Position numbers and translations under genes: made by a program. A stretch of 64,000 nt of DNA from positions 20,832,001-20,896,000 of the forward strand of contig OZ116712.1 of the NCBI GenBank assembly GCA_964199315.1. The letters run 5' to 3'. A model generated the notes under the pieces. It did not search any database, was not told the origin of the DNA, and was given only the letters and a program-made list of their open reading frames with translations. Source of the DNA: Orbicella franksi. Lineage: Eukaryota. Shown here in pieces: positions 5,280 to 62,792 of the stretch (its first letter is position 1; every line of letters begins with the position of its first letter).

Positions 5280-8200
5280 ATGGCGGGCTATTTTGGTCAT
5301 GTCGGAGGACATGTGCCTCCTTATTCAGTAGGTGGCCATGGATTGAGTCATCCTGCTCCAAATATCGATTTCTTCAGCCAAATGGCACCTCCACCATGCG
5401 GTAAGTTGTTTTGTAATAGACATTAAAGCCAATTACGAGCTTTATAGTTTGGTAAATGGAGGGCATGATGAGGTTGCCGTTGCTTCAGTTACAGCCGTCT
5501 ACTGTTGTTCCGGGCAACTTTGCTACGCCTAGGACGGTATATTAGTGGACATATTACATTCCATCTTTCTAGGCTCACTGGAACTGCTGAAATAATTGAG
5601 AGTTAGTAAGAAAACTTAGCTTTGCAAATTAAGAATTCCAAGTTCCCGAAGCGTGAAGGTCATGGGATCGAAAACGTCCTTGCAGATGAGGCGCAAATTT
5701 CATGAAAAGATGCGCCCTGAGATCTTTATGATTTCTTATTCACGTAAACTTATTTACCGACCATGCCAAAATTGTAGAAGTCCGACGGGCTGGGTTGCAG
5801 TTTTCGAGGTAATCCGCAACCTTGGGAATAGCGCAGCGACATTCGTTGGGGCACGTTGTAGCATGCTTATTTTGAAGGCTTTTTAACCTTTTGGTAACCT
5901 AAGAAAAGCAATTCAATTTGCTAATAGAAACAACGATTTACATGTACGGATTTTCACATAAAAGCATTGTTTAAACAGTTCTTGTTTGCTATATAATTAC
6001 ACATCGTTAGAGGCTTAATAAATCATCATTCCGTTTGCGGTAATGTGAATAAAATTGCAATGGACGACACTAGATGACAGAATTGAACCAGAAGGAGTTA
6101 CGCGGTAATAGTTTTAGTTTTGTCTACACACTTGTCTAATTTGTCGAAGAAGGCTCCACTAATTTATGACATTGAGTGCAATTATGTCTGGTCTGTTGAT
6201 AAAACAAACGTCCACATGCGTCAGGATCCACTTTTGATGTTTTGACACCACACTGTCGAAGTTTCTTGCCCTTCGTTCAATCATACTGCCAAGTGTGGTT
6301 TCCTTCAGCATTTTAGGTCATGTGTGGATCGTTAATGAGCCATTTTAATAACGATTCTAACAACTATTCGGTTAAACACGAGAATAAACTTTGTGTTCTA
6401 ATGATTACCTTGTCAAAACACTTCATTCCAGTTATGGCGCGACATCCGTCTTTAATTAGAGTCTTGTGGTTACTTCAGAGATCGTATGCGGGCAAACAAA
6501 ATCTCACATTTTTTTTTCTTTACAAGTCGTTACAGCATATGCAATGCACTTCTGATGCCATTCTATTTCTGTGAAAGCTCTCACATGTCATAAAATCGAA
6601 TGTGTTTACTTTTCAAATGTTCAGACGCCCATGCGGTGGCAATATGGTGGACGTAACTTCTCCCTGCATGGGAGCAAGATGTTGTTGGGTTGGTAGCCTG
6701 GGATGGTGTCCATGCAGTACAAGGTCTCAGAAAACGTTTAACAGCAGCAATAATTTTCATCTCAAATAGTATTGTACATGTAGGTGCAAGAGAGTTACAG
6801 GGAAAACAATTTGGACAAAAACTTGTAGATGCTGCTTGGACAAAAACCTGAAGTATGACGATTCAATCTAATTGCTCGTAGAGAATTCTCGTGGTTCTGT
6901 CTTCTGCATGTTTTTCTTTGCTCTCTGTGTGCAGTGGCTGGTTGGTTTGCCACGAAAAAAGAAATCTAAGTTACGACTATGCGGTGAAGGCTGTCGTCAA
7001 CTATGTTCTCGTGTTTGTTCTGTTTTTGTTTGTTGTTTGTTAAATGTGCTTGTAACTTTTGAATCTGTTAGGTTACCTTCTGCAGTGTAAAAATTATGAA
7101 ATGAAAGCTGCTGATGATTTGGACAAATTCAATCGAAATTGTGAAAGTCGGTCAGTGGATAGAAATCTAGAACAGAAACCTAACTTAACGGTGTATGAAA
7201 ATGAAGAAATTCCTTAATCCATTAAACTCTTTAATGGCAATAACATCAACTAAGAGATCGATCGTTCTAATCCAGTGGAAATATTTCTCAGTTACATGTG
7301 GACGTATGTGATATTGTCTAAAATCTGTACAATGCCTAAATTTGGGCCCCTCGTGAATTCGTCTAACAATTTATGTTTAAGTGTAAGTATTTTGGGTCCA
7401 GCTGTCGCTCTTAGCAGCAAGGAGATGTGTAGTCTGTAGCGTATGTTATATAAAAGAATTAAAGACATTTGTTGCTTGTTCAGTAGCATTGTCCAACTAT
7501 GTCCGTAATGTTGGCTTGGAATAATAACGAATACAGACAGTATTTGGCCTCCGAAGCCGCTTATAAACTACATTTCCAAAATCTCTCCTCAAAATTTAAA
7601 AGTTGCAAAGAACAGTCTCTGTTCGTTTGGGTGAAGGCAATGTGAGCAACTCAGTGCTAAACAAAATTCGGTATGGAATTATCTAATCCATACATTTTTC
7701 AGTGTTGTGAAAGTTTCAACTGCTAGGAAACGGGCGTTAGGGTCCGGAAGCTCGGCGATATAGTCCTGCTTGGCTAAGTATCAGACGTTGTGGGTAATAA
7801 CCACATATCTGGCGTTGGAGTTTACGGAAGGAATGAATGGCAACAGGGGCGAGGTCAACGTATTTGGCTGCTGCTAACATTGTTTACGGGTCTCAAATGC
7901 ATACTTTGGGTTTGTTTTATTACAGGAGAACATTTTTTCGTTTTAATCTCTTTAAGGCAACGAGAGACACTTCCTCTACTCCTCCACGTCGATGATATTT
8001 CGTTTCGTTTGGTGTTCTTGTCTACCTGGCGACATTTACACAGGAATTAGGCATATGTTGTTATGATATTTCCTTATTTCCTTGAAGAGCTTATGAACTA
8101 ACAGTTACACGAATTTAACGAGCATGCACGCAAAGATTAAAGAAATAGTTATGCATTACTGAATAAAGCTGACGGAAGTTAGAGCTACATTTGAAGGGCT

Positions 8201-11200
8201 GAAATTTTAAAACAAGTCTTACACTTTCACCTCGGAATTACAAAGTAAATTCAGAAATAAAGGGGACTTACAAATCTCAATTGCAAGTTATTGTGACATA
8301 CTGTAAGATGTTTCAGATACGTTATTTTACTTCAAAGTGATACTCGACTGGATTGTTTTCAGCTAAACTAACCATTTCAAGAGTTAACTTAGATAAAGAC
8401 AGTTTCTATTTCTCGCTTTACAGACTGAAAAAGATTTCGTTTCTGGTAATTCAGTAAGGCACACTGTAAATATACCCAAGTTATCGTGACTCAATTGACT
8501 TCAGACAAGTTCATTACGTGTTATGATTTGTTAGTGGAGTTTATCAAACCCCCCTTCACCATTGACTAAGATCATATCATTTCCTCTTTTCTGTGGTTAT
8601 CAAAACATTCTTTGTTTTTTAACTTAGCATGAAGTCTTTTCAGCCTACCCTAGTTTTCGTAAACATTATTATTGCTCCATGAACGCTTCTTGAATAAAAT
8701 GCAAAACCTGCGGGCGAAGAGTTAACAAACGGTGTGTTTTGACGCAATTTTCTCAGACACTCACAGAAGATGGAATATTGTCAAACAGTCCGTCGACGTT
8801 TTTGTGTGTGATTTTCCACTTGATACGAAGAACCAGATCGACAAAATTATAGATCACTGCATGTAGAATAAATTACGCCTAGAGGTACAGAATTGGTGAC
8901 TTTTATAATCAATTAGCCTGTGTTCCTTGGCCAGGGTGAAAGATGTTTGTACATAATGCCTGGCTACAACCTCGTGCAGATACTTCGTTCTACTTAACCA
9001 GTGGCTCAAGCATGCGCAGTAGAAACCAAGCCTACCAGTGAAAGTCAACAAGTATGTATTACTACGCATGTTTGAAATAGGGCGTATAATCGCGTGATGC
9101 GTGAAGTGTAACACGGGGAGTGTAACACAAAATCTCAGTAGGTAACAAGTTCTCAAACACAATACAGTCTGTTTGTATTGAATTATTCATGACGTTATTT
9201 CAGACGTGAAAAATAATATAAAGTTGAAGCAGGGAATAAGGATTACACTGAAGTGTATAACCCTGAAAATGTCCAGCCAAGGAACCAATCCCAAGGAAAT
9301 ATGAAATTGAAAAGCCATTCTATCGTTTTATAATTTTATTTCTCCAACTGAACCAGGAATTCAGTGCAGTCTTCTCCAATTCTTTTGATAAATTCTCTGT
9401 TTTGGTATAATTGGTAGGCGAGGCAAAGTTCGAGGCAAATCCCAGCTGGTCGTCAATGTTACCATGAGTTTAACGTTTCTTGTGGTTTTGGGTTAAGCCA
9501 TATGGTTAAGCGTCTAAGAATCTTTACCGCTCTACATGGATACTAATCTATCGCAAGTTCATATACCAAGGAAATATGTCTTCTCTCGAAGATGTATCAT
9601 GGCCGTACAGTCATTTCCAGTCCAAACTCATTGTAAACAGATGATTAAAACATAGCTGGACGGTTTCATTATTTTTTTTCTCATCTACCTAAAACAGCTC
9701 GGCAACAACACGCTGTGTAAAAGGGGTCTTTATGTATGATGACACAGAATGTGTACGTATAACTAATTTCAAACTTATATGACAAATGACTTTATCTCAC
9801 TTAGGTCCTCAAAGACACTGCCCTAGCGGTTAGTCTCCATTTAAAGGCAAATTGTTTCTCGTTTTACAAAGCATAACCAGTTGTTTAGCTGCTTAGATAT
9901 ATTTGGTCTTAACTCGTTTTGCGTATAGCAGTTGTTTATAGTGTTAACTGTCTTGGAAAATTACACAACGATACCTAAGAGCTTCTTTCAATCCAGTTTT
10001 CTGTTTTCTGACTTTTGATGTATTTTAGAGCTGTAAATTAAAGTAAGCATGTCCAGTTAAAACAAACAGCTTAAAATGTACTCTTGTCGTAAAATATTAT
10101 TAGTTTTTGTAGAGCTGTACAAGACAGAAAAAGTTGATTACCTATCACATTGGGTAGAACAATTATGCTTTCACGATCACTTTTTATCTTCTCATGACAT
10201 GACTGCTTGACTTTGTATTGATAAGACGCTGATCAGGTGTTAATTCTCAAAGGCTTAGTCTATCCTACTCTTATGCACTCCAAAGATCACTTCATAAATT
10301 CTCCTAAGTACTTGCTTACATTTGGTTTTAAATATACTAGTTCTAAGAATTTAATAGCATATCACTGAAGACTATTCTCTAGTTTATGGTTTTCTGAATA
10401 CTTATGAGGGAGTTGAATTAAAGATGTGTTTTCTGTTTTCTCCCAACACAGCTCATCCACGAAAACAGCGCCGAGAACGAACGACTTTCACTAAAGCTCA
10501 GCTTGAAATTCTTGAAGAGCTTTTCACCAAAACAAAATATCCTGACATCTTCATGAGAGAGGAGGTCGCCATGAAAATCAGTCTCCCAGAAAGCAGAGTG
10601 CAGGTAAATATTTCGTTCTGCTGTTAATGATACTTTCAAATTGTCATGATAAACGAAAACCTGTAGAGGGATGTAGCAATTAGAGAGAAAATCAATTTGA
10701 GCTCCATTTTAACTCTTCCAGCTGCGCGAGATTTGCATATTGTTCTCAGCACGCGTTGCCGACCTATGATAAACAACGTGCGGAATAGTGTCAACAAACG
10801 CGCGCGGTTGTCGCGACTCGCGCGCAAAGACAAGCACGACATGGCATAAGGCTTTGACTCTCAAGCATAGGCTGCTAGACTTAAAAATGTGACATGATGT
10901 CAAGAGGTTGTTCCAGGTGACGCCTCGATAAATCGAAGGTAATTGTTGGACCCGATTTATTATCACCCTTAGACAAGATCGTTAAACTATAGATGTTGTT
11001 GCAAGTTATTTCCCGTTGTTTTTTCATTGAAATATCGGAGAAAAGTAAAGTGCAAGAAATCAAGTGCAAGACATCATTTCATGTTGCTGTACACAAAATT
11101 ATCTTCAGACAAGCGATAACCTCTAAACAATAGATGATGAGGTTGAAAAATGCCACTACTCGAAATAGACAGGTGTGGTAAAGATGAGAGAAACAATTCG

Positions 11201-14200: not shown

Positions 14201-16571
14201 TGTCAACTTACGATGCCAGAAAGAGCTGACAACGTAACTGCTAGAAAATGTAACACGGAATGTTAGAAGTATTTATCAGTTGATTACAGGTTATCGAAAA
14301 GTCTGGCAGTGTTAAATATTGTGCAAACAAAGAGAATGTTTCAGGAAATTTTCATGACATTTAGGAATGGAACTCGATCTATGCGCCATTACTGAAATAA
14401 GCTTAAAAGAAACAAGGACAACTTTATCAAGGGATCGACTGGTGTGGATTAGTTTCAACAAAAGACTTTGGCGATAAAAACTGTCTGGTCTTCTCAGTCA
14501 CGGAAATTCAAAGTCACGAACTTGTGTTCAAGTTGCAACTCGATTCTCAGTAAAAATTGCGAAATATTTGTCATGCTCAAAACATGCACAGAATTATAAA
14601 AGTCGCATCTTTCTCATTGCGCGAATGTGAGAGAGAAGCAAGAAGCATTATGATTTGTTTTTACACCAAATCTCTTATTTTTTTTTTTATCACTTAGGGT
14701 ACTCTATAAGGAGAAGGTATTTTAAAAAGAACTTCCTGTTGAAATGGAGGCAGACATTTTCATGTTGTAAACCGGAGTATGTTCTACTTTACATTTAAAT
14801 CACTATGAAATTAACGTTTTCTTATGTATTAAAAGTCAGCTTTTGTGCTTAATTCTGCATAGAGGTTAGCTTGTTGGTGACATGACGGACCAAGTAAAAG
14901 CTATTGATCAGACTTTCATGAAAATGTTATACAAGCTCTACCTTTAAGTCTGTGGATGAAACCCTAGGATGTGACCATTCAAATGAAAGCTACTGAGCAG
15001 TACTTTCATGTGGTACTGTTTACTATGCTGTGCAAGGTGGCTCTATCTTTTTTTTGTAAGTCTGTGGATGAAACCCTGGTATGTGACCATTCAAATGAAA
15101 GCTATTGAGCAGTACTTTCATGTGGTACTGTTTATTATGTTGTACAAGGTGATTCTATCTTTTCTTCTAAGTCTGTGGATGAAACCCTAGTGTGTTACCA
15201 TTCAAATGAAAGCTATTGAGCAGCACTTTCATGTGATACCGTTTGTCATGTTGTACAAGGTGGTTCTAACTCTTACGTGTGTGGACGAATGAAAACTCGT
15301 TGAACAACACTTCCCTTTGCCGTTAGTTATTAAAACTTCTGTTAATAATTTGAATCATTGTCGACTGTGACTAGTTTTTCACTTTTATATGTACCAGTAT
15401 TCCACGCAAAACCCGTCACTTAATGTATACAAAACAGGAGTAGCTAAACCTATCTCTTATCTTGCCCATTTTACTTTGAAATAAAACGTAAAGAAGATTA
15501 AGATAAAAATCGCTATAGTTTTTTTTTTCTCTGCTTCTTTGTTACATCAAGCTCGCGGTGGTGTAATGATTTAAAAAATGCGAATAAATTGCGGTAGAAG
15601 ATTGCGTAAATCGTCATTCCCATGGCCAGACAAAAACAATTTTAAAACTTTTAATCCCAGTCGGACGGTTGATACAAGCAGTGGGATAAATCCTGTATCA
15701 CCGGTCTGAACAAAGAAGGCTGTTAGAAGGATTATCCATAGAGGAACGAAGGCATACTCCAGAGTAAATCCGATCAAGATCTGATGAAATATCTCACGCG
15801 AGACTGACAAGTTACGTTGACAGGTGCAATATAGAGATGACTATCTCAAGGCAGTTTTCAGTTTGTTGTATAACTGAGGTTTGGATTGAATTTGTTAAAA
15901 CGACAACTAAAACAAAGTCAATCTTCAATTTTTTTGAAGTCTACCGTTGAATATTAAAAGTACACGTTTATCAGTGCAGTTAAAATAAAATGCAATTTCT
16001 TTGTGTAAGTAGCAATAGTCATATTTTAAGCGCAGTAAGATAATATCGATAAAGCAATCAAAGATTGGTTACGGTGAAATTAGTTTATGCTTCGCTAGCG
16101 GAGATCCTCCGAAGCTTATCCCAGCAATCATCATGACTGACTTTTGTTGTATTTTTACCGTTTTAGGTGTGGTTTAAGAACAGAAGAGCCAAGTGCCGTC
16201 AACTGGACAAAGCCGCCGAAAATAAACGAAAACTCGAGAAGAAATCCTCGCCTGGAACAGTTCCTCCTTCAAAAATCGAGCAAAAGAAATCAAGTCCTTC
16301 GCCTTACCAGCTGCCAAGCTGCAGTGCGAACATCAACAACATATGGCAGAACGGCCCAGCATCGACGCCACTAACACACAGTCAAAATTTCCCAACTCCT
16401 CCCGTGCTGACAAACAATTCTGGTCCGGTGTTCATGCCTCCCCCTCACCCTCCCCCTGCGCCTGCACCTCCGCCGTATTATCGACCAAACTCGGACTGTT
16501 CTTACATGTCGTCACCTTACATGCATATGAACAGGCCTGGCGAGCAGGCTTACCCCCCAACACATATGTAA
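5280..16571 (+). CDS. Otx: Orthodenticle/Otx homeobox transcription factor (PRD class, K50), 3 coding exons, 225 aa
   Basis: Exons 5280-5400 ([19 protein letters not shown]...PPPC, G|gtaag), 10452-10603 (cag|[51 protein letters not shown]|gt) and 16167-16571 (tag|[12 protein letters not shown]...THM*). Phases are 1 and 0 and the total of 678 nt is in frame. [11 protein letters not shown] and [11 protein letters not shown] are diagnostic for Otx. The intron at homeodomain codons 46/47 is the classic PRD-class position. Confidence 0.96.
12713..12862. repeat. Degenerate copy of an interspersed hairpin-type repeat in Otx intron 2
   Basis: Imperfect inverted segments (cgcagttatgtatgtacgtgacttg ... 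ttaagttgcgcacacaactg) resemble a common coral repeat. Recognised from recall, no search run. Confidence 0.35.
14895..15315 (+). repeat. Tandem satellite with a unit of about 112 bp, 3 good copies plus degenerate flanks
   Basis: tgtggatgaaacc recurs at 14951, 15063 and 15174. Each copy is followed by ...accattcaaatgaaagctaytgagcagyactttcatgtg. Confidence 0.9.
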
Positions 16572-18651: not shown

Positions 18652-19110
18652 GATACTTCCATCTAATTAAAACCGCAAAATAGGCCCTTTACCCAAGTTA
18701 GACAGCCAACCAAATAAGCCTTATTTCATTGTCCCTCGGAGCGGACAACCATCTGGTTTAAAATAAAATGATTTTTTTCCCGTCACTTCGTTTGTACGAG
18801 TAGAAACCCATCTAGGTGAGACTGCAGTATACGCTATATTTCATGTCTCCCAGAGTAGACACCCATCTAATTTAGACTACAATATAAGGCCCCTTTTATT
18901 GTGTCTAGGCAGACTCGTACTTCTCGGTCATAAGCAGGGACCCATCTCAGATTAGACTCAACTATAAGCCATAATGTACGCGTTTCTGACCAGACGTCCA
19001 TCTGATCAAGACTACAACAATGGCCCTCTTTTCTTGTGCCTAGACAACCATCAAAAATATTCCGCTGTTCTCCTTGTTCGAGAAGAGACCCATCTAAATA
19101 GGAACGCAAC
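18652..19110 (+). repeat. Degenerate array of RGACNNCCATCT-(N5-6)-AGACT motifs, spacing about 40-60 bp
   Basis: CCATCT at 18659, 18749, 18808, 18863, 18942, 18998 and 19089, plus CCATCA at 19048, all on one strand. Confidence 0.75.
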
Positions 19111-28724: not shown

Positions 28725-28776
<52 letters not shown>

Positions 28777-31198: not shown

Positions 31199-31246
<48 letters not shown>

Positions 31247-31719
31247 TTTGAATCTAGAAAATTTGATCAAGACTGTATGCTTCCAACCAGATTTTTAGAC
31301 AGGTTTCTTCTACTGCAGATCGCAGAACGCGACATCCATACATACAAGTCACTAAAATTGTACACCAATATTTTTCTCGTCTTGAGACTAACTTTGTGAG
31401 CACAGTATGAGTTTTTTTTTCCTTTTTTTCAAAGTGTGTTTTGGACAAATATGTCGTGGAGTGTAACTCAGACCTGTATTTGATCGATTTAAGATTTTTT
31501 TTGGCAACCACCACCGACCCCACGACGATAAAAAAGTCGGAAGAACTTTTGAGATTTCTCTGCTTTGAGCGGTCTAGGTACTTTGCGGTAATTGATTCAC
31601 TCATGCTAAGCGCTCGTTTGTTTACACTTTGTGATTGAAAAACATCCTCAAATACAAGTTAAATTACATTTGCTGAGCTACGATACTATTTCAAGACTAA
31701 AACAAACCTTTCGTGGCAT
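19893..31719 (-). CDS. PHF10: PHD finger protein 10 (BAF45A/SAYP-like PBAF subunit) with SAY domain, double PHD and an extra C-terminal PHD, 16 exons, 558 aa
   Basis: Minus-strand exons: 31719-31708 (MPRK, least certain), 30329-30035, 29427-29350, 28901-28834, 28325-28260, 27833-27705, 27301-27192, 26479-26347, 25949-25863, 24696-24588, 24019-23907, 23366-23291, 22412-22324, 21164-21100, 20587-20478, 20029-19893. All phases are compatible, 1677 nt in total. SAY motifs: [45 protein letters not shown]. Double PHD: CGICLKG...[17 protein letters not shown]...[11 protein letters not shown]...[16 protein letters not shown]. These closely match vertebrate PHF10 as recalled. Confidence 0.92.
20733..21044. 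mobile_element. MITE, PIF/Harbinger-like, in a PHF10 intron
   Basis: Terminal inverted repeats gggacggaccattatttt ... aaaataatggcccgtctc, flanked by tga and taa. No ORF. Confidence 0.7.
21524..21886. mobile_element. MITE with (GACGGC/GTTGCC)n subterminal repeats, left end truncated
   Basis: ttaagaaaccacgacggcgacg at the left is inverted to cgttgccgtcgcggctttcttaaactccct at the right. Confidence 0.7.
22979..23192. mobile_element. Hairpin-type MITE in a PHF10 intron
   Basis: tagcaagcgtt ... aacgcttgcta ends, with an internal inverted pair cattctggccgcgcgcaaattggagc / gctccaatttgcgcgcggccagaatg. Confidence 0.8.
23695..23849. mobile_element. Tc1/mariner-like MITE, 155 bp, TA target duplication
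   Basis: ta|cagtcgaacc...ctattaaacggccacc ... ggtggccgtttaatagggg tggaactg|ta. Confidence 0.8.
24255..24530. repeat. Interspersed repeat fragment (aatcctgcaatctgattgg family)
   Basis: Related CCAAT-containing repeat segments also occur at about 50215-50510. Family recognised from recall only. Confidence 0.4.
25302..25647. mobile_element. Non-autonomous element with poly-G and poly-C ends
   Basis: A long G tract at the left and a long C tract at the right, with internal ggtacc repeats. The subterminal sequence is related to 49025-49136. Confidence 0.7.
28732..28774. repeat. (TTA)n microsatellite
   Basis: About 14 consecutive TTA/TAT units. Confidence 0.95.
29575..29939. mobile_element. Non-autonomous element with ccaggg...ccctgg termini, poly-G/C ends and an imperfect 10-bp target duplication
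   Basis: Left flank tttgtgcatt (29565-29574) and right flank tgtgtgcatt (29940-29949), 9 of 10 identical. Confidence 0.75.
30415..30775. repeat. Interspersed repeat with an internal long hairpin
   Basis: tttctattgagttatagaaacac...ttgggagaac...gctgtggaaacac is inverted to gtgttcccacagc...gttctcccaa...gtttctataactcaataaaa. Confidence 0.65.
31199..31246. repeat. (TAA)n microsatellite
   Basis: About 15 consecutive TAA units. Confidence 0.95.
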
Positions 31720-31900
31720 CCTGAAGCGAAAATGTCTTCCACGTTTTGAACAAGCAGTCACGACAAAGCGGCCATTTGCAGGCGCGGTGACCAATTCAGA
31801 CTGTACCAGTTTCCCTCGTATTCTCTGCAACGAGGCCGAAAGGACGGGCATTCGTACAAAAGATTGCCAAATTGGAATCACGTTTTAGTGCCATTCCGTT
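31720..31900 (-). promoter_or_regulatory. CpG-rich promoter region of PHF10
   Basis: CpG density rises abruptly relative to the gene body. A YY1-like GCGGCCATTT lies at about 31768 and a CCAAT at 31791-31795. Confidence 0.45.
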
Positions 31901-32028
31901 GTTTTCCTTAAAGGGAGTTACGGAGAGCAGTCGTGTATCAAGGAAATACTTAAACTAGAGGTTAATTTAGAAAATACATTCTCAGTCGTACACACGTGAA
32001 TTCTCCGGGAACTGAGGTGAACTCTGAA

Positions 32029-32790: not shown

Positions 32791-35700
32791 TCTGAATTCA
32801 GCTGTATACGTCTGAATTCATCTGAAAATAGTTTGAGTTGAACCAAGACATGACTGTCTAAAGGAACCTGACTTTTTACGGCGTTTTACATTTGTATAAC
32901 TGCATAAAATGGTTTCATGAATAACTAAAATCACAATTTCTATGGTGAACAGTTGTCGACCCCCCACAACAGCTTGAATCAAATGACCTCCTCGAGAGAA
33001 ATAATCTCTTAACTCTTCAAGCAAACATTACAAACAATCACTTTGTCGCTCGTAGAAAGAAAACAAAGTAAATGCTGCAATGTGAGCCCAACAAATACGG
33101 AAAGATTACCTCTTACAAATCATCGAAACTAATTATAATAAACAAGCAATAAGCAGTTTGTTTATCCAGAAAAAAATTCTGTTTGCCAAGAGCTAAAGCA
33201 TTCTAGATTTCGTTTCAGTGTCCAGCTATTCTGGGCCAACAAACATAAGCAATCAATTCTAAAAACTCCCGGAGCGCCCTTAATTTTTACCCACGCGACG
33301 TTTTTCCAGCTCCGTCGCTCTCTGCTCTTTTGTTGTCCGTTCTGGTCTTTACCATTTATACGTCCAAAGAAAGCTGTTGGATTATTGTTTCCTTTTATTG
33401 TATTTCGGTAGACGAGAGAGAGACAATGTTTTGACCGACTCTTGGCCAAGCTTGAAAAGTTCATGATCCCTCATCAGTGTCGTTCAATATCATTTATGAG
33501 AATTTAGTGGTACCTCTGAGAAATGCAGTAACTCCCAGTTGATGGTTATCGTTATTCTCTTTACCGGAAGACAAGACAATGCATTGGCACTGTAAGAGGA
33601 TATTAAATCTTGATCACACTATGAAGCCCGAAGTCTTAATTTGATTATAAATAGGCACAGCGTTAGATTTCAACTCGAAAAATGAAGGGTTTTCAATGCA
33701 GAATTGCGCAAGTTTGACCTGCAAATCAATAAGTTAGCACCTATAGCTAATTGAGACATGCAGAACCAACGATTGCACTTGAATATGATCATTTTCATAA
33801 CATAAGGAGACCATGTGATTTTACACAGTGTTTTCACGCACGAGTCCTAAAAGCTCACACACACCACGCCTTACACAAGTGGCGGTTTTTCCGCTGGGGT
33901 AGAGTTGATGACTTTATAATTATGATATTGTTTAGTATTTCCTCTATAGTTGCAGCTCCTTTGGTGTGTACTGATTGAAAAGCAACAGAAACAACTTTTA
34001 ACGCTAAACCAGTATGCCCCAAAATATCAACACCAACCCGGATGGAAGTAAGAAAGCTCACTTCTTAGCGGAAATTTCTCCTATAAGCAGTTTATAAAGA
34101 AAGCCCAGAGGTTGCTGGTCAATAGAATTTATTTCCTATTGATAAGAATTTGTGACCAGAATTTCTCTCTTTGTTAAAAGCTCGTTTTAGGCAATTAGGT
34201 TAAAAATGCGGTGTGGCCATAAATTTTTGTTTTAAACAAACCTAAGAAGACTTTGAACGAAACCATGTTCAAAAATAGATCAGTGTAACCTTTTCTAACT
34301 TTACTATAGAATTATTGCTTCGGTCTCGTCCCCGATTATGGCTCCTGTTCACACCCAAGGCACCAAAGCTTCCGCGTTTAAATGAAAAGGTTGTTTTCTT
34401 GTACTGATGTAAAAATAACTTTTGTCGCCATTCGCAGATAACCTGTCACTGCCCTCCCAGCCTGTTATAACACGATTACTAATCTGTTATCTACCGCTCA
34501 TGGGGTTAACACCGATCGCACGCGAGAGGTGGTGGGAGGTCGCGGAGGTTTCAAAGAGTTTCACAACTTGTTTGAACTCTCTTGACAAGGGAACACTTTG
34601 TGGCAAGATCTTGTAAAATATTTCTCTTCCTGAGGGTTTAAGCTTACTTTAAAACTTGTTTAAGTACCAGGTCTTTGACTTAGTGAAGTTCTATCTCGAT
34701 TATGAAAGCATGAAAGTAAAGCTAGCTTTGTTGTATGGCGTGTAGCACGGCTGCTTTTTGCAGAATGATCTTCTAGGATCTTCTTTAGATTACACCGGCT
34801 ACATTGCGTTTAGTCAAGCGGACAAAATTACAATGGCAATTCAGCGAACACAGCACAGACTGCAGAAGAAATCAGCATTTCCCATTTTCTACTTTTCTCA
34901 AGCTATTTGGATCATATCTTTAAGAAATAACACTGCTACTAGTTAAGATGCCTCTGCAGTCTCTCGTTGTCTAGGACTGATAAACAAGACTGCCTGATGA
35001 ACCATCGCTGTCTGATGCGCATGTAGATATCGTTGATTTATTATTGAGCAGATCAGTGTTTGCGGAATACAAAGCTAAAATAACAGAGGCTTGGATCTAA
35101 AGTCGAATGGATCATCAAAAATAACAACCCGATCGAGGATCTTACTTAATGGCGAGATCATGTAGTTAGATCTTAAACACGGCAACGCGAAATGGCAAGG
35201 AGTGTCATAAGCTATATGGCATTATATTGTCTTGTGACTGATCAGCACAGGATCTTTTGTTCTGTCTGCTTTAGTTTTACCTTTGAACCTTCCTATTTTG
35301 TCATTCTGCAGGTTGGAACTCCATCAAATTGACTGAGTCAAGGCAATGTAAACCATAGGTACATATATTTTTACAATGTACCTAAGTATACATGCATTTA
35401 CATGTACACACATTCGTACGACACCACTCAAAAGAACAGTGTGAAGCCGCTCACGGGGGTGTTACAGTTTTCTTTCCGCTATACTTTGTGGTTTTTCACT
35501 TGCAGGCTGCCAGACTACAAAACTAAGGTGCTTTATCTCTTGTTCTAATAGTTCTAACCCAGAAATAAAATATTATAGCCGCATGTAATCTTTCTTTTGT
35601 TAGTCCTTTTCGATCAAGACCACAGTGTTTTAGTGACACGATAACCACAGAAAGGTGTTAACCAAAAAAATTTAATAAGCGGAACCCATGTTTTCTCGGA

Positions 35701-37399
35701 TGTCTTTCATCGTGCTGTGACAAGTTCGACTCTATAGATCGTAACGTTATATGTAGTGTTCTGCATTGTTTAAATATATCGGAAGCAGATTGAAAAAAGT
35801 AAAAAGAAGAAAAAGGGTACATGAGTCTAGCTTGGCGAGAGTTTATAGATAGATAAGATCAGACATTTTATGCCGTTTAACGCCGGAAAGACGGTTTGAT
35901 TTGCTGCAGGTTCTTGCACGATTCGCTCACTAAACTGGCGACTCTTCCAATATACGGTTCCTTACTGATTTAAGTGTCATCCCACGAGAGCTTTTGTTAT
36001 TATTTTCACAGAAAAAAACACCATTTAAAACGATGCAAACCACGTGAAGAAAGAGTCAGCAATTTCTTACGAATGGCAAGCTCACCAAAAGCGAAAACCT
36101 ATTTTCAGGTGAACAGTTCAGTTCACCTTCGTTGACTCATATTATGGAAATAAGAACTCTCATCACAACTCGACAAGACTAACTTGAATTGGGAATGAAC
36201 TGAGAAAAGACGCCGAAGAAAGAGCGAATTTATCTCATACCAGTTTTTCGCCATATTTCCATAACTAGAGCTGTTCTGCCCTACCGGATTACTGCTCCAA
36301 AGGTGAATGTCTGGCGGGGCAAACGCGTGCTGTAAGCCGCTTGGAACTGCACTGAAATAAAACGATTACAACGTTGTTGCTCGAAAAATTTAGTCGAAAA
36401 AAATTGTTAACACGAAACGTGGAAAAATTGAAAAATAGAAAAGGCTAGCAGGTCTCAGCACAGAATCGAAAGGATCGGAAAACAAATTAAAGATTAGGAA
36501 ATAGAGTAAACCAACAAAGCCCAAAAACAATGTTCATTAACTCCAGGTAAACAGGTCCAAGCAAACATACCCCCTTAAAGAGTCAAGAAATTAGAAACAC
36601 AAAACAACTTTATTAAACTAACACAACGCATTTGAGTTCCCCCACGTTGAAGTACAACAGAACTTTTAGATTTTAATAAAAAGCCGTCATTTATTAACAA
36701 GGAAACTTATACGCCTCAATGGTAAGGTAATTTTGTTTCATGAAGTCTCTAATTAAAGTTTGCATAGATTTTTCAATAACAACATTTGGATGTTAGGAAA
36801 AAGTTGATTTTCGGAACGTACAGTTCCTAAAGTAACTAAAGTACCGGAGACAGAATCAAGACAAAAGTAATTAAAGCGATAATTAAGTAATTACACGCCA
36901 ATTCAGTTCTCTCACACAGTTTGCAGATTAGACTGAAGTTTTACCGCCAAAGGAAAGCAAATCTCAAGCAAAGGTGTCAAAACAGCGAACTTCGATAATG
37001 TGTTCAAGAACTCCGTTAATTTCGCGCCTAAAATAAAAGCCTCTAGGCTAGAAAATAGCCTCAACTCAATATATAAACAGTTGTAATTCGTTTGTTGTAA
37101 ATGCGAGCGTGTGAAAGTTTGTTTGAAGAAAAGTAAAAAACATAAGGTGTTGAGGCAGCGTAAACTTGTATGGGAGTCCATTTGTGGAATGTAACTCAAC
37201 TCCTCTAGAGGTTGGCTGATAGTTTCATGAGAGTTTGCTGACACGTTTCTCGCAAGATTATCCGTGTATACATTTCAGCTGTCACTCCGTGGTCCTTATA
37301 CTTCAAGAGAATGTTTATCTAGAACAAAAGAGTTCAACTAAGGGTTACGTTCTGTGGTAGACATATTCTTAGCTATAAGTGAAGTGTGATGCTTGTTTC

Positions 37400-37908
37400 A
37401 TAGCCGGAAAAAAATAAAGGATTAATGCGTACTCACACCCGTGCTGCACTAACCTCTAAATCGTTGGGGCGGGGCTTAAAGTGATAGATCTGTCAATCAC
37501 TCTACCGATGCCTGCACGATTTGCGAATTACCCTTTCGCCAATTACTAAAAAGACGCTGTCAGTAAAGACCACAATTTCAAGCTAATTGACTCGGCTCCC
37601 TGTGTTATTTTAATCAAATTTCAATTACCAATCTGCCCTGTGATTGGTGGATTTCCGACGAGCTGTCCCCGGCCGCGGAGAGGCTGTTCGATTTAAACAA
37701 ACACCTCTTATGACGTAACGAATTAACACTGTAAGTAATTCGTAAATCCTTTTTGGATACAAAGCGGCTCGCAGATTGGGTCTATTAGTCAGTCAGTGTG
37801 ATTCGGTGACCCCGAGCGAGCGTACTTCTTCCGGCCGGTTGTTGAACAGTGTTTAAAAACACAGTGCTTAAGGATTTTTGGTTAGATTTAATTTCGGGTC
37901 AAGGGATT
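37400..37908 (+). promoter_or_regulatory. Goosecoid proximal promoter
   Basis: GC box GGGGCGGGGC at 37466-37475. CCAAT/ATTGG boxes at 37539, 37628, 37643 and 37775. TGACGTAA at 37711. Inr-like TCAGTCAGT at about 37789. The region is CpG-rich and directly upstream of the ATG. Confidence 0.6.
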
Positions 37909-40900
37909 ATGTCCGCCTTCAGATCCTCCTTTACAATCGAGAGCATTCTTTCGCGGCCGACCCATCAACGATGCATGCCGTATACCATTCCACACCCGTA
38001 CCCAATTATGCCTCTGGCTCCAGGCTATATCGGTACAGTAATATTGTCTCTTTACATTGTGTTTCATCTCAACAGGTAGATAGAATTCCCGGGCTGACTT
38101 TGCGCAGCGCTTACAGCAGACCGACATAAGTCGCTGACTGAGTACTGTGGCAGATTACAGCCAGAGAAAACGGCAGTCCCAACTCACGTGGTGCCGTTTG
38201 TAAGATCATTACATCGTATCAAGGACTTACTTGACGATTTGTTACTCCCCGAATCTCGCTAACACTTTAATTCGCTCTATCCTTCAAACTCTCACACGCG
38301 CAGATTAAGGTTTCAAAAGCTTAGCGAGGTCTCACAACAGATGCTGTGTGTGATACCAACAGAGAACCTAAGTGAAGATAAACAGGTCAAGTCGCCCTAC
38401 TTTGCCTCACTAATTTCACCGTTTGTGCGAATTTATTTTTCAGGATTTCCGCGATTTGGTGATCTTTTGCGCTCTCAGCCGAAGCGCAAGAGACGACATC
38501 GGACGATATTCACAGAAGAGCAACTTGAACTACTTGAGGGCACGTTTCAGAAAACACACTATCCTGACGTTCTCCTCCGAGAAGAACTAGCAATGAAGGT
38601 AGACTTAAGGGAAGAACGTGTCGAGGTGAGACATCATGATTTATTAACTGTTATGCAAGTAGATAAGCCGACATGTGCGTGCTTCAGTTGATGTCTCTAG
38701 TTTATCCTGCACAAACAGAATGTGTTGCTTTTGAATATTATTTCCACTTAATCTTTGACTCTGCCCTTTGAAATGGTAAGGAGTGTATTTTCCGCTATAT
38801 GACAACGATTCCTCTCGTTTATCGAAGTGTTTCATGTCAATGGGGGCAAATTCGCGGAAACGGGCCGTAAAAGCGATTTGTGCCTCTCACCGCTTCTAAC
38901 GGAGGAAACCAAAAAATGGCCCTTGACCAGGTAAACCTCGCGCAACGATTTACACTAATGGCAACAAACTGCTACCAATTTGCTTTAAAAAGAGCAAATA
39001 ATAAAATCGACGGCGCATATCGCCCTTAAAGATGCACTTTTTTTCCAAACAAAAATTCCCGCACACCAGCAAAATCTAAATTTGTTTTTGTATTGTACAA
39101 ACACGTCTCAGCTTACTTGATGCTATTGCTGGTTTCACTAAGGGCACCGCAGTGTAATCGTAATAATTGTGGGGTAAATACGATAGCATATTGCTGTCAA
39201 AACTCAGAAGATTAATGATTTCACTAGAATGCCCTTACAGAACCCTGGCACGTCCAGAATTTTGAGTGACAAGTACATTCCGATGCGTTCAAGCAACGCG
39301 CGGCCCGTCCCAAGATATCGTACCCCATCGTTGAACAATCTTGTGTTTTCAACGCGAAGAGGCTGTTGCAACGTCCGTTATGGTGTTGTGGGGAGAAAGG
39401 GATAGGAACAGGACCAGGTAGTGCTTTTCGTAATCGTGTCAGCTCGCACACCAGCAAGTGATAATATCTCTGGAGTTGTAGCGCCCGAGGTACAGGTACA
39501 AGACACTCTTTGACATGCTGAACTATGAATCTGGTAGCGTTGAACTTAGATTTCATAAATGTCCTTGTTTTTGTTGTCTTAGAAGCATGCTTTTAAAGAC
39601 TTTTCAATGACAAGTCAAACTGATTTTGAAAGAACGGAGTCTTCGACGCCACCTTGGCGCGCCGTTTGCATCCGTTCGTGTTCGTGTTACACCCATTCTC
39701 TGTGGGTTTCTATCAATGTGGAATGATTCTTTTCTTTATATATCTTTCGGTGATTATTTGTCGAGAGTTTTAAAAAATTCAGTTTATTTCGAGGAACAGC
39801 AAGAAGGTTCCACTGGTAAAACACCTCTGAGGTTCGAGATTAACACCGTTTTCACAGTCTGCATGTTGTGTTAACCAGATTTGCACTCGTGGCGACCGTA
39901 AGTCTTGAAGACGTGTGAATTCTCGCGCTTTATAAACCCCAGGCATCGAACGTGTAATTGAATCAAGAAAGTCATACCTAGGTTAAAAAACACCAGAGTA
40001 AACATAGAGAGACTTTTTTAATCAAAGGACCAACAGCTCGTAACTGCGTTTAAAATGGAGGCAAACTTGTAAATTGACGAATTCAAACGGGAATGCAGTG
40101 TTCAGTCTTCCAGTCACTTGCCATGAATTTCCATCTTCCAGTAATATTGTTTCAAGAAGCTAGAATTTTAGGTCTTTTTGTCAAAGTTTGCTATCGTGAT
40201 CAACAGTTTTTTGAAAGTAAAAACAGTTTTAGCAAACGTTCCTAAGGAGAACAGCAGACTCTTCATTTGAGTAGTTTTCCGGCCTTCGAAACAAAACATT
40301 AGCCACAGCTCTCTCGACACCTCTCACTTCTCTTTTTATCTAAAACTTTATCATTCGTCCTAAAAGCGTGGAAAAACGTCTGTCGTTAGGAAGGACATAG
40401 TCTAGTATGTTGTTTTTCGGCTTTGCGAATCAGAAAAGCTTTGAGAATAACCCAGTAAACAATGCTGAATTCCTCACCATAACCTGCATTCACTACGACA
40501 CTACCTACGGACCTCAGCCACCTCTTGCAGGCGATCGAGTGTTTGCGTAAATATCTCGTTCCTCGATGTTTGACATTACAGCGTTGTATATAAGCAGACA
40601 CGTATAAAGCTACGTCTTGTGACTTCCTTTCCTTCAAAAAATGTACAGCACTGGGAAACGGTGAATAAAGCTTTGATCTGGAGGTAAACTTCCATCACTA
40701 AGGGTCAAGATTTCTTCTTCCGAATGTTTGCAGGGGAATCATAGAGACATCCATATTTGTAGATTGGTTGGCATACATTGTTATTAAATTTATCCAGAGT
40801 TAACAACTATTTTAAAGAGTCTATAAGCATTTGTTAACAGCAGCAGAAAAGCTTTAGCCATGTAAACGTCTGCGTTCTTAGTAATTAACTATCACTTGTT

Positions 40901-43900
40901 AGGTTCAGTTGGTTTGCCATTCTAGAATGGGGCGATCGATGTACTAACCATCGAGTCACTCCGCTGTTTACTTCTCGACCATGAGTTGTTATAGTTTTCA
41001 TGCACTTCCATTTAAATTCTTTGGCAAGAAATTCCTGCAGAATGCTGTTTCGGAAACGGATACAAAACACTAGATTCTTCAAGATTTGTGGCTCTCTTCA
41101 GTTCGCATCGTTAGTGAAGGAATCGATTGGTAGGTTCATTATCAAACTTACCGATGTACTAAATGGTCTAGATCGGATTTGGTTTGTGTTCTCGTTCGTT
41201 TGGATTCCTTAAGAGATTTTTAAATTGGAAATTATACAAGCCGATTTTACCAGCTCCCTGTTGTGTATCAGTGAAAGAATCAGTACAGTTCACACCACAT
41301 TAATTATCCACCCACAAACACGGCGCGACATGAAGACAACTGAACACTCGGTTCTCTGGGATATAAAATAAATTGTGGTTTCAAATTCAAGTAAGAAGGA
41401 ACGATATGCTCATTTTAACACTTAGATGCTGGGGTTTAAACGCTTCAGTGTTTCAATGTATTCATTTAGGGGTTATATATAAACGTTCACGCGAGATTTG
41501 ACAGAATAGAGAACGCGACATGAAATGCTTAATCCAAAACGTGCGGCTGGTAGTAAGGGTGATAATGATTTTTTCTAGTTTGTACCAATGCTCTGAGATT
41601 CTAACCATATGTATTAAAATCGCAGGGTTTTTTTTTTGTTGGTTTGTTTCGACAATTTTCAAACAGTATGAAAGAAATTTACGAAGCATTTATAGGGTCT
41701 GTTAACTCGGTTTCTTTAATAGTTAGTGATGTGCACTCCGCAGATTTGCAATTTATCTGAGGAATGTTCGTGTCGTGTTCAACTACAAATGCTCTGAGAT
41801 TCTAACCATATGTATTAAAACCGCAGGGGTTTTTTTTGTTTGTTTCGACAATTTTCATAACGATATGAAAGAAGTTCACGAAGCCTTTATAGGGTCTGTT
41901 AACCTCGGTTTCTTTAATAGTTAGTGATATGCACTTCGCAGATTTGCAATTTATCTGAGGAATGTTTGTGTTGTGTTCACCTTTGTCAAGCTTAAAGTTT
42001 ATGTTCGCTACATTGAGGAACCACTGAAAGGTGCTTGTTGCAGTTTCTTCTAATGTTAATAAAATACGAACAGACCTTGCTCTATACATTTTCGTTTAAA
42101 TTATTTCATTTTCGGTTCTCTCCGGAAAGGACCCCAGATCTTTAAATTGTTTCACGGATGTTTCTATGTTGCAGTTAGATATCTAAGTTACATGCTAACT
42201 ACCTTTTCAACTTGCATTTACAGTTAGACTTTCTCGTTCTCCAAAGTCTTTTTTAATCATTGTTTGCAGTCATTTTGAGCTTGCTTATAAAGGCAATTAA
42301 TTATATCATTTTGTGTTCAACTTTCGTTCAGGTTGGTGATATTTCTTGAATTCTGCGTTCAAACAGATGCTCATTCGATCGGGGTCTGCATCAGAAGACA
42401 CATTTGTTGTCATAATTTTAGCAGCAGTTGCCTTACGGAACAAGCAGGAGACTATTTCAAAATTTAGATACATGAGTTAATTTTCATTTCTTTCATCTAT
42501 TCCACATGATATTCTATAAGGTCTTTGGGAAATAACGATGTTAACACTCAAGTATTACTCAGAAAATGGATTACAGTAAGTGGTCAAATTCCTGACTTTG
42601 CAACCGAGATGAGTCTGACTGACTGACTTGCACTACTGAAACTTAAGCATGACAAACATAATTCGACGCACAGAAAAACGAAACAAAAAAGATAATCAAA
42701 AATTATAGAAAACTGTCTCGACAGCTTGTAATAAATAAACATAGAGCTTCCACAATTTCTCTGGACTCGTACATTTCAAAGGAAAGTTACTGAGTTTTTT
42801 GTTTTCCTTGTAGATGCATTTGTTACCAACTCGGTTACAAGCCAAATGTCTATATAACGAAGAAACATTTCTAGAAAAATTATCATAGTCCAGTTATTTA
42901 TTTCCCAACATCAAAACGTTTTTCGCCCTCTTGTAAGAAGTGTCATGAATAGAGCATTTGTTTGATAATATATAACAAGCTGCAAGAGTGCCAACAGCTA
43001 GTGAGAACTTTTTATAATTTAATTTATGTTTTTTATTATTATTGCATCAATTTATGGCAATGGTAACTTTCAGAAAACGTCATGCTTGGCCTAGAAATAT
43101 GTGTAAAATATTCCAAAGGAGAGACAGAAAATATTTGAATACTGAAGTTTCAGAAAACTTGCTTCCCAAATTTTTTTGCTCAAAATTCCACATTGTCGAA
43201 TATGTGCAAAGAATTTTCACCGCTCAAGTGGATCAGAAAATATTTCATGAGATGGTTTATAACTGATACTTTTTTATCTTTTGCATAATCATTTTGATTC
43301 GGTGATTAGAGGGGTCTTAAAACCCAGCATCAATATTATCCGCTTTCTGTAGTCTTTTCTCGTACCAGTGACCCCAAAATTTCAAATGTAAGTACATAAC
43401 TGCTTGGTTTGCGGTGCATTTAATCCGCTTAAAGGTCTTCCAACATTAGCAGAGGTTTATATTACTAAGGCTTTGCTAGAGTTTACAACACAAAAAGCTA
43501 AATCTGAACTTAAAATTAAAATTTCAAGCTATTATGTTTGTAATTTTGTGTTTACAAATTCCAAAAAAAAAAAAAAAAAATTGAGGGGAAAACCCGGCTA
43601 TATTTATGCCCAGAGATTTATACGAACTGAAGGTAGACAGGACGATCTGCACCGACCAGCGATGGTCATCATAGGAAAAGAAATCGCTCACCAGTTTAGA
43701 ATGACAAAGTTTCATTATCAAGTTATAACCCATTTTTTTTTCCTTTAGGTGTGGTTCAAGAACCGAAGGGCGAAATGGAGAAAACAAAAGAGGGAAAATC
43801 AAGAATCTAAGAAGAAGACTCAAGATTTAACGACAACGAAAACCACTGAAGATTTACGAATACAAAGCTCTCCAGCAAAGGACAAAGGAAACGACAGGGA

Positions 43901-44048
43901 AAATTCGTGTGGCATACATGCACACAAAATCTTGGAGCTATCGAAAGAAGCAAACGTAGTTCAAGAGACTTTCACTGACACATCAAGACTCAACTCAAAA
44001 GGGCGGCCAGTGACATTGCATTCTCCTACAGTGAGCAGCAAAGTTTAG
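37909..44048 (+). CDS. Gsc: Goosecoid homeobox transcription factor (PRD class, K50, N-terminal eh1 motif), 3 exons, 201 aa
   Basis: Exons 37909-38032 ([14 protein letters not shown]..., eh1 motif FTIESIL), 38444-38625 ([48 protein letters not shown]|gt) and 43749-44048 ([16 protein letters not shown]...KV*). The total of 606 nt is in frame. [25 protein letters not shown] and the eh1 motif are diagnostic for Gsc. Confidence 0.96.
41587..41978 (+). repeat. Direct tandem duplication of about 201 bp in Gsc intron 2
   Basis: atgctctgagattctaaccatatgtattaaaa starts at 41588 and 41789. The two copies align through tgaggaatgtt..tgt..tgttca. Confidence 0.93.

Positions 44049-57509: not shown

Positions 57510-62792
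<5,283 letters not shown>

Follow-up and report, generated by a model that had tools for sequence, protein, structure and literature searches.

A stony-coral locus with OtxA, PHF10 and Goosecoid: probably an anthozoan Otx tandem cluster beside Gsc

In this work, an Otx gene, a PHF10 gene and a Goosecoid (Gsc) gene were found next to each other in the window, the 64,000-nucleotide stretch of Orbicella franksi DNA that was analysed. The Otx gene, an OtxA orthologue, is encoded on the plus strand by three exons. Exon 1 (5280..5400, 121 nt) begins with ATG, ends in phase 1 and is followed by the donor GTAAGT; exon 2 (10452..10603, 152 nt) covers homeodomain codons 1-46 (Pfam PF00046, E 6e-14), and exon 3 (16167..16571, 405 nt) contains homeodomain codons 47-60, the C-terminal region and the stop. 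The exon 2/3 junction follows ...RVQ and exon 3 opens with VWFKNRRAK, so that homeodomain position 50 is lysine (K50). The introns are 5051 and 5563 nt and the protein has 225 aa. The N-terminus encoded by exon 1 is that of Actinia OTX2-like and of the Logan transcript ORF P0313, a spliced ORF from public assembled contigs of close relatives that also matches the splice junctions. Exon 3 showed 49% identity to Nematostella OtxA, the sole named match of that search. The K50 paired-like homeodomain of Otx-type sequence, with its Pfam homeodomain match, places the gene in the Otx family. Moreover, the N- and C-terminal regions can be aligned with Actinia OTX2-like, and in the tree the window Otx forms an OtxA clade with Nematostella OtxA, Actinia OTX2-like and Exaiptasia OTX (support 94/95).

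The Gsc gene is also on the plus strand. Its exon 1 (37909..38032, 124 nt) begins with ATG, ends in phase 1 and encodes an eh1-like motif, FTIESIL. Exon 2 (38444..38625, 182 nt) covers homeodomain codons 1-46, with a Pfam match and named goosecoid matches in Exaiptasia, Lingula and molluscs, and exon 3 (43749..44048, 300 nt) contains homeodomain codons 47-60 (K50), the C-terminus and the stop. The introns are 411 and 5123 nt, the protein has 201 aa, and the junctions were matched by the spliced ORFs P0140 and P0143 from public assembled contigs of close relatives. The best named matches overall were goosecoid of Exaiptasia, Acropora, Montipora, Lingula and molluscs. The K50 paired-like homeodomain together with the N-terminal eh1/GEH repressor motif FTIESIL assigns the gene to the Goosecoid family. 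The initial annotation had given both genes a K50 homeodomain, an intron at homeodomain codons 46/47 and a short phase-1 first exon, and all of this was confirmed in Otx and in Gsc. Its intron size of about 5 kb holds for both Otx introns and for Gsc intron 2, but not for Gsc intron 1.

Between the two homeobox genes, a PHF10/BAF45a-like gene is encoded on the minus strand (19893..31719) by 16 coding exons that form one open frame of 558 aa. Coding exon 1 (31708-31719) encodes MPRK, the SAY-domain exon lies at 30035-30329, the exons for the tandem PHD fingers fall within 23291-24696, and exons between 19893 and 22412 encode an additional C-terminal PHD finger. Every acceptor is AG and every donor is GT, except for the GC donor of the SAY-domain exon. 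This exon matches named PHF10 of vertebrates, amphioxus, Lingula, Pecten, Acanthaster and Limulus, and the tandem PHD exons share 62-82% identity with amphioxus. An N-terminal SAY domain followed by tandem PHD fingers (with a PHD Pfam match) is the PHF10/BAF45a pattern, from which the coral protein differs by its extra C-terminal finger. The PHF10 ATG is preceded, at a distance of about 45 nt, by a motif (31763..31782, minus strand) that is kept in two other corals and has the core AAATGGC, which we take to be YY1-like. It lies in a CpG-rich patch where the CpG observed/expected ratio is 1.13, compared with 0.53 in the gene body, and is a probable PHF10 core promoter. The PHF10 start was set by comparison with the other corals and not by RNA reads, because no reads were placed from two raw poly-A RNA runs of the same species label, and the Logan contigs of two metatranscriptomes gave sparse, patchy cover with zero splice joints.

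Otx and Gsc are on the same strand, as had been noted, and the distance from the Otx stop to the Gsc ATG was measured as 21,338 bp (21.3 kb in the initial annotation). That antisense PHF10 is the only gene between them was also confirmed; it is tail-to-tail with Otx (3.3 kb stop to stop) and head-to-head with Gsc (6.2 kb ATG to ATG). Since their starts are 6.2 kb apart, PHF10 and Gsc do not have a common promoter. By a rough estimate, the chance that two given genes lie within 21 kb of each other on this 21.5-Mb chromosome is ~0.2%. On the far side of Gsc, an MFS transporter gene (49508..52130, minus strand, PF07690), by our reading monocarboxylate-transporter-like, is followed by the 3' exons of a giant WD40-repeat gene (58249..62076, minus strand) convergent with Gsc. 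The same giant WD40 gene neighbours Gsc in Nematostella and Actinia. An Rfam scan of the whole window matched zero families, and Tandem Repeats Finder gave no array at 18652-19110 in the Otx-PHF10 spacer. The window has 35 TAATCC (K50) sites against 30.5 expected, which is no enrichment signal; two of them fall in the conserved block upstream of Gsc.

The locus had been described as a cluster of two K50 genes. Both genes are real, but the number is an undercount, because four more Otx-type K50 homeobox genes (P1-P4) are located within 80 kb to the left, on the minus strand of C15:20,761,000-20,812,000. Five Otx genes, which belong to a head-patterning family, then the chromatin gene PHF10 and then Gsc are thus contained within 115 kb, and the orientation of the Otx array is (-,-,-,-,+), with P1-P4 minus and OtxA plus. 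In the tree, the Otx genes were distributed among three hexacoral orthology groups, namely OtxA (94/95), P4 with Nv otx5 (100/99) and P1-P3 with Nv OTX (94/97), so every Nematostella Otx gene has an orthologue group in the coral array. The tree and the layout, with three paralogue groups in tandem and the OtxA member divergently transcribed, show that the Otx genes arose via tandem duplication. The array comprises one OtxA orthologue, one orthologue of a second Nematostella Otx and a coral-specific triplicated group orthologous to the third.

C15 also carries a cluster of four Six-class homeodomains (7.306, 7.341, 7.389 and 7.423 Mb) and NK2-type homeodomains at 17.007 and 17.023 Mb, in addition to Otx/Gsc at 20.76-20.88 Mb. 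All four members of the Six-NK2-Otx-Gsc ancestral linkage group, reported at chromosome scale by Zimmermann et al. (2023; PMC10719294, Supplementary Note), are therefore on one chromosome. Otx and Gsc share a chromosome in Nematostella and amphioxus too (PMC10719294 supplement), and the earlier statement that human OTX2 and GSC are both on chromosome 14 is correct (14q22.3 and 14q32.13; PMC2211742). On the other hand, the suggested link to the Hbn-Rx-Otp cluster was not supported. On C1, Otp (44.340 Mb), Rx (44.352 Mb) and Hbn (44.373 Mb) form an intact cluster within 33 kb that is unlinked to Otx/Gsc on C15, and in Nematostella the two groups are likewise separated (chr8 vs chr2).

The gene order extends beyond one genus, since Otx-PHF10-Gsc was found in two other coral lineages with unalignable PHF10 introns, from which alone the depth of divergence of these comparators was judged. 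The Tara Pacific coral scaffolds L014-L019 contain the same trio with 15.9 kb from the Otx stop to the Gsc ATG, and in the ENA contig ERZ25073751:ctg102092 a distance of 23.7 kb separates PHF10 from Gsc, which are again head-to-head. In one coral, an additional 17 kb with a sulfotransferase ORF lies between PHF10 and Gsc. The locus-tag numbering of Gsc (G034542) and the P4 orthologue (G034546) on one Oculina contig suggests the same order there as well. In Actinia, OtxA (229.6-233.0 kb) and Gsc (378.3-384.8 kb) are on one scaffold, 145 kb apart, and the order WD40 - Gsc - Otx is that of the coral, Gsc being flanked by the WD40 gene on the side away from OtxA. Rearrangements have occurred, since Actinia and the coral differ in how the genes are oriented relative to the WD40 gene. 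In Nematostella, 16 Mb of one chromosome separate Otx from Gsc. PHF10 was not found within 10 kb of Gsc in Actinia or Nematostella, nor within 10 kb of OtxA in Actinia; it gave no usable anchor in the anemones, because no full-length cnidarian PHF10 was found among the representative proteins searched. The Otx gene of the octocoral Dendronephthya has another Otx within 10 kb instead of PHF10 or Gsc, and in Lingula PHF10 and Gsc are on separate scaffolds. The trio is thus kept in stony corals and absent in the 10-kb flanks tested elsewhere, which is not the pattern of deep target-bystander synteny, and among the genomes testable a PHF10 between OtxA and Gsc is limited to stony corals.

Conserved non-coding elements (CNEs) between Otx and Gsc were looked for and are present. 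In the comparison of diverged corals they are located in the interval from the PHF10 start to Gsc and in Gsc intron 2. An element with paired GATA-like motifs (34407..34587), 3.4 kb upstream of Gsc, was found in 3/3 corals. Directly upstream of Gsc there is a block (36477..37908, plus strand) with ~72% identity among corals and with CCAAT-, CRE- and TCF-like motifs; its core, ~37590-37820, is also found in Actinia (85% over 110 nt) and Nematostella. Gsc intron 2 contains further blocks (38626-39271, 39613-39701, 39820-40005 and 41259-41431, spanning 38626..41431, plus strand), in which the segment 39164-39242 is alignable to Actinia too. In the PHF10 gene body, on the other hand, blastn between diverged corals aligned only exons and no intronic CNE, at a resolution that leaves room for enhancers smaller than a hit. 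The lone non-exon match is 56 nt in opposite orientation and is probably a repeat.

These elements bear directly on the proposal that PHF10 is a trapped bystander carrying shared enhancers. If the locus were such a genomic regulatory block, PHF10 would contain enhancers of Otx and/or Gsc, and the three genes would be inseparable. The order and orientation kept in at least three corals with unalignable PHF10 introns, and a housekeeping gene flanked by a developmental gene on both sides, are what this would predict. Microsynteny in stony corals may be high overall, so conserved order alone would not show constraint. The CNEs are not spread throughout PHF10 and instead cluster at Gsc. Furthermore, the insertion of 17 kb and a sulfotransferase ORF is tolerated in one coral, where the -3.4 kb element goes with Gsc and remains on its side, 4.4 kb from the Gsc ATG, and the Gsc promoter element persists in the anemones, where no PHF10 was found within 10 kb of Gsc. 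Judged from the conserved sequence, no support was found for a regulatory block, and it is the least probable of the explanations considered. PHF10 reads best as an ordinary housekeeping gene with its own CpG-rich promoter and without conserved elements in its introns.

It is instead fairly probable that the locus is the known anthozoan Otx tandem cluster lying beside Gsc, within the known Six-NK2-Otx-Gsc linkage group. The closeness of Otx and Gsc, with Gsc between the giant WD40 gene and the Otx cluster, is probably at least as old as the hexacoral ancestor, and the corals and Actinia together point to an old hexacoral proximity within the published linkage group. The Nematostella lineage would later have moved the two genes 16 Mb apart. 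The same 16 Mb, as well as the absence of PHF10 from the vicinity of Gsc in the two anemones and of OtxA in Actinia, would agree with a neutral juxtaposition, in which intrachromosomal shuffling on the stony-coral stem joined the Otx cluster, PHF10 and Gsc and slow genome evolution preserved the result. However, the Actinia order WD40 - Gsc - Otx within 150 kb would then be a chance proximity, with a likelihood of about 2%, and we regard this explanation as improbable, though somewhat less so than the regulatory block. A deeper origin, in which Otx and Gsc are ancient tandem K50 duplicates whose adjacency predates the cnidarian-bilaterian split and corals are nearest the original, is also unlikely, yet ranks ahead of the juxtaposition. 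K50, the 46/47 intron and the phase-1 first intron are common to both genes, which are adjacent in corals, 145 kb apart in Actinia and on one chromosome in Nematostella, amphioxus and human. On the other hand, the 46/47 intron is widespread among PRD-class genes, the first introns interrupt the two genes 5 and 15 codons ahead of the homeodomain and so are not one shared site, megabases separate the genes in Nematostella and human, and the octocoral Otx has another Otx beside it. A shade more doubtful is the full scenario in which stony corals keep the near-original state of these duplicates while anemones, bilaterians and others stretched it to megabases on one chromosome. If that were true, no living model of a primordial K50 homeobox pair would be better than the compact coral locus.

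Under the preferred reading of an Otx cluster beside Gsc, Gsc would have its own compact candidate regulatory domain, which reaches from about -3.4 kb to +3.5 kb and contains a promoter module that hexacorals have conserved. Otx and Gsc proteins both read TAATCY sites (PMC6679436), and because of this any functional tie between them would be in trans. Old homeobox neighbourhoods are few beyond the Hox, ParaHox and NK clusters, and the spacings of 21 kb in the coral and 145 kb in a single anemone narrow the published chromosome-scale linkage to near-adjacency in hexacorals. The locus lets one ask whether two factors competing at shared DNA sites used to be neighbours. The negative result is of value too, as the trapped-bystander reading of PHF10 is without backing from conserved non-coding sequence. 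The Gsc promoter module common to corals and two anemones is a candidate for reporter assays. A literature search found no publication naming both PHF10 and goosecoid.

By comparison with known systems, the Otx-Ehbp1 genomic regulatory block (Irimia et al., 2012; PMC3514665) likewise has Otx beside a broadly expressed non-homeobox gene, whereas the coral neighbour is PHF10 and intronic CNEs were not found. Ehbp1 was rejected as a bystander here, as no bMERB or NT-C2 match was obtained on C15, and the Otx-Ehbp1 pairing was reported as lost in N. vectensis (Irimia et al., 2012; PMC3514665). The Homeobrain-Rx-Orthopedia genes (Mazza et al., 2010; PMC2938728) are PRD-class, have the 46/47 intron and are clustered in cnidarians, as are Otx/Gsc, but they are Q50 and on another chromosome, whereas Otx and Gsc are K50. 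The published Six-NK2-Otx-Gsc linkage is on the megabase scale, in contrast to 21 kb between coral Otx and Gsc. The Nematostella OtxA/OtxB/OtxC cluster (Mazza et al., 2007, as cited in PMC2938728 and PMC10719294) likewise consists of tandem paralogues in the orientation (-,-,+), with the layout OtxC(-), OtxB(-), OtxA(+) according to the coordinates and orientations in the PMC10719294 supplement. The coral array differs from it in having five genes, with the group of one paralogue triplicated, and in that PHF10 and Gsc come after its OtxA within 21 kb, whereas Nematostella has its Gsc 16 Mb away.

Otx (plus strand; exons 5280-5400, 10452-10603 and 16167-16571; 225 aa) and Gsc (plus strand; 37909-38032, 38444-38625 and 43749-44048; 201 aa) lie in the window at 20,832,001-20,896,000 of C15 (OZ116712.1), a 21.47-Mb contig of the 497-Mb Orbicella franksi assembly, and 21,338 bp separate the Otx stop from the Gsc ATG. 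The splice junctions of both genes are matched by close relatives' spliced ORFs from assembled contigs (P0313, P0140, P0143). The models bear out the spacing of about 21.3 kb in the initial annotation, as well as the features ascribed to both genes: a first exon ending in phase 1, an intron between homeodomain codons 46 and 47, and K at homeodomain position 50. The introns of about 5 kb do not extend to Gsc intron 1, which measures 411 nt. The top named protein matches for the window genes are from stony corals, the closest being Oculina patagonica, with only 58% identity in the Gsc C-terminal exon. The gene between Otx and Gsc was rightly named PHF10, since its SAY-domain exon matches named PHF10 of vertebrates, amphioxus, Lingula, Pecten, Acanthaster and Limulus, and its tandem PHD exons share 62-82% identity with those of amphioxus. 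The complete PHF10 model (minus strand, 31719 to 19893) has 16 exons, 558 aa and one GC donor. This donor, in intron 2 (AG/GCAAGT, 30033-30034), is GT at the same site in two other corals. At the C-terminus, four extra exons (19893-22412) add a linker rich in Cys and a third PHD finger, with a Pfam PHD hit on one of these exons (E 3e-5); the first of the four is also matched by Limulus PHF10 and two representatives (P0069, P0095). Intron 1 contains a repeat of ~375 nt with an internal inverted segment (30400-30780), for which 2,751 candidate matches were obtained assembly-wide at first look; among the 40 scored, on many contigs, full-length matches were 86-88% identical, and the repeat resembles a young MITE-like family.

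The genes PHF10 and Gsc stand head-to-head, with starts 6.2 kb apart. The CpG observed/expected ratio is 1.13 and 1.05 at the PHF10 and Gsc starts, respectively, and 0.53 in the PHF10 body. Given this gap and the separate CpG-rich patch at each start, the two genes have no bidirectional promoter in common. The head-to-head orientation claimed for the pair stands. Two other corals conserve coding exon 1 of PHF10 (MPRK followed by a GT donor) as well as a motif upstream of it whose core is AAATGGC. On six scaffolds from Tara Pacific coral metagenomes (L014-L019), Gsc exons 1-2, the entire PHF10 and exon 3 of Otx follow the order and orientation of the window, with the Gsc ATG 15.9 kb from the Otx stop. 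In another coral, the PHF10-Gsc side was examined on a 3.26-Mb ENA contig (ERZ25073751:ctg102092), where the two genes are head-to-head and 23.7 kb apart, with an intronless sulfotransferase ORF (PF00685; 5287-6543 of the extracted stretch L013) and ~17 kb of additional sequence separating the start of PHF10 from Gsc. Because the PHF10 introns of both comparator corals fail to align with those of the window by blastn, both lineages are judged deeply diverged from O. franksi. Furthermore, OtxA and Gsc are on a single chromosome-scale contig in Montipora foliosa, and the locus tags of Gsc (G034542) and the P4 orthologue (G034546) on one Oculina contig fit the window's gene order as indirect evidence.

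Conserved non-coding sequence was searched by blastn of the window against the two diverged corals. The blocks concentrate around Gsc: a 1.4-kb block directly 5' of the gene (36477-37908), an element at -3.4 kb (34407-34587) with an 80-nt core carrying paired GATA-like motifs (~34.44-34.52 kb), and four blocks in Gsc intron 2. Within the upstream block, the core (~37590-37820) carries CCAAT-, CRE- and TCF-like motifs; it matches Actinia at 85% identity over 110 nt and is alignable to Nematostella too. In the coral that has 17 kb inserted, the -3.4 kb element remains on the Gsc side, and for this reason the conserved elements are assigned to Gsc as its own putative regulatory domain, which is compact and conserved across hexacorals. 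The initial annotation raised PHF10 as a possible trapped bystander with shared enhancers. In the same comparison, nothing aligned inside PHF10 beyond the exons or in the Otx-PHF10 spacer past the Otx 3' end, so the gene gives no sign of enhancer cargo at this level of conservation. Ehbp1, the known Otx bystander, is not on C15 by searches for its bMERB and NT-C2 domains. TAATCY sites are common targets of Gsc and Otx (PMC6679436); this is a relationship in trans that does not require linkage, and TAATCC sites are not enriched in the window.

The Otx-PHF10-Gsc microsynteny holds in other coral lineages, and it is absent beyond stony corals in Nematostella, Actinia, Dendronephthya and Lingula. 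Nematostella Gsc, at chr2:2.77 Mb, is 16 Mb off the Otx cluster (PMC10719294 supplement). The 10 kb upstream of it contain neither a called gene nor a PHF10 or Otx match. One 620-kb scaffold of Actinia tenebrosa (WAHB01000013.1) has OtxA at 229.6-233.0 kb and Gsc at 378.3-384.8 kb, 145 kb apart, and the 10 kb around each gene lack PHF10. Dendronephthya, an octocoral, has two Otx genes tail-to-tail and no PHF10 within 10 kb of the one examined, and in Lingula Gsc and PHF10 are on separate scaffolds. Downstream of Gsc in the window, a giant WD40-repeat gene, whose 3' exons are at 58.2-62.1 kb, is convergent with Gsc, as in Nematostella, and the same gene flanks Gsc in Actinia. Two MFS transporter genes form an inverted pair ~19 kb apart (49508-52130, minus; window-equivalent 70884-74470, plus), with a block of ~80 residues almost identical between the copies; they read as monocarboxylate-transporter-like. 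O. franksi (21 kb) and Actinia (145 kb) have WD40, Gsc and the Otx cluster in one common order, which suggests that Gsc was already near the Otx cluster in the hexacoral ancestor and that Nematostella then separated them. Inversions have occurred, since Actinia and the coral differ in gene orientation. We hypothesize that the closeness of Otx and Gsc goes back far among hexacorals, within a still older linkage group, and that the position of PHF10 is a stony-coral feature with no apparent regulatory meaning. Both the Otx cluster and the linkage at chromosome scale are already published; our literature search found no paper naming PHF10 together with goosecoid, and none describing Otx and Gsc in tight adjacency in corals.

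A homeodomain scan of the entire assembly and a six-frame reading of the 80 kb left of the window revealed four additional K50 genes of the Otx type, all on the minus strand (P1-P4; homeobox exons at C15:20,762,479, 20,774,865, 20,786,276 and 20,811,835). The second and third exons are intact with proper splice sites in all four, and the first exon was mapped for P4 only. Together with the window Otx and Gsc, there are therefore six K50 homeobox genes (five Otx and Gsc) inside ~115 kb. In a maximum-likelihood tree, the Otx genes form three hexacoral orthology groups: the window Otx with Nematostella OtxA (support 94/95), P4 with a second Nematostella Otx (100/99), and the third Nematostella Otx with P1-P3, a triplication specific to corals (94/97). 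An open frame at C15:20,760,157-20,760,489 (minus; window-equivalent -71844 to -71512) resembles the C-terminal part of P1 exon 3 without the homeodomain end and is probably a partial duplicate left from array expansion. The array, built by tandem duplication, represents an expanded form of the anthozoan Otx cluster already known (Mazza 2007, as cited in PMC2938728). Its orientation from P1-P4 to OtxA (-,-,-,-,+) mirrors the (-,-,+) order of Nematostella OtxC, OtxB and OtxA at chr2:18.74-18.80 Mb (PMC10719294 supplement).

The locus had also been raised as a possible relic of the ancestral PRD cluster, known as Homeobrain-Rx-Orthopedia in cnidarians and protostomes. This cluster is intact in O. 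franksi on another contig, C1 (Otp(+) - Rx(+) - Hbn(-), 33 kb, C1:44,340,000-44,374,000), and in Nematostella it is on chr8, whereas Otx and Gsc are on chr2, so the two loci occupy different chromosomes in both species and the proposed linkage was not upheld. On a further contig, about eleven PRD-type homeobox first halves with the 46/47-intron pattern occur in 133 kb (C9:9,287,000-9,420,000). The homeodomain scan of C15 gave a four-gene Six-class cluster (C15:7,306,000-7,423,000) and a homeobox cluster of at least eight genes (C15:16,972,000-17,060,000), in which the two homeodomains read are NK2-type. With Six and NK2 on C15 and Hbn-Rx-Otp on C1, the locus is part of the Six-NK2-Otx-Gsc linkage group, not of the cluster formed by Hbn, Rx and Otp. 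The human genes are indeed both on chromosome 14, OTX2 at 14q22.3 and GSC at 14q32.13 (PMC2211742), in agreement with this linkage. The Six-NK2-Otx-Gsc linkage was described for Nematostella chr2 and amphioxus (Zimmermann et al., 2023; PMC10719294 supplement), and C15 likewise carries Six, NK2, Otx and Gsc genes.
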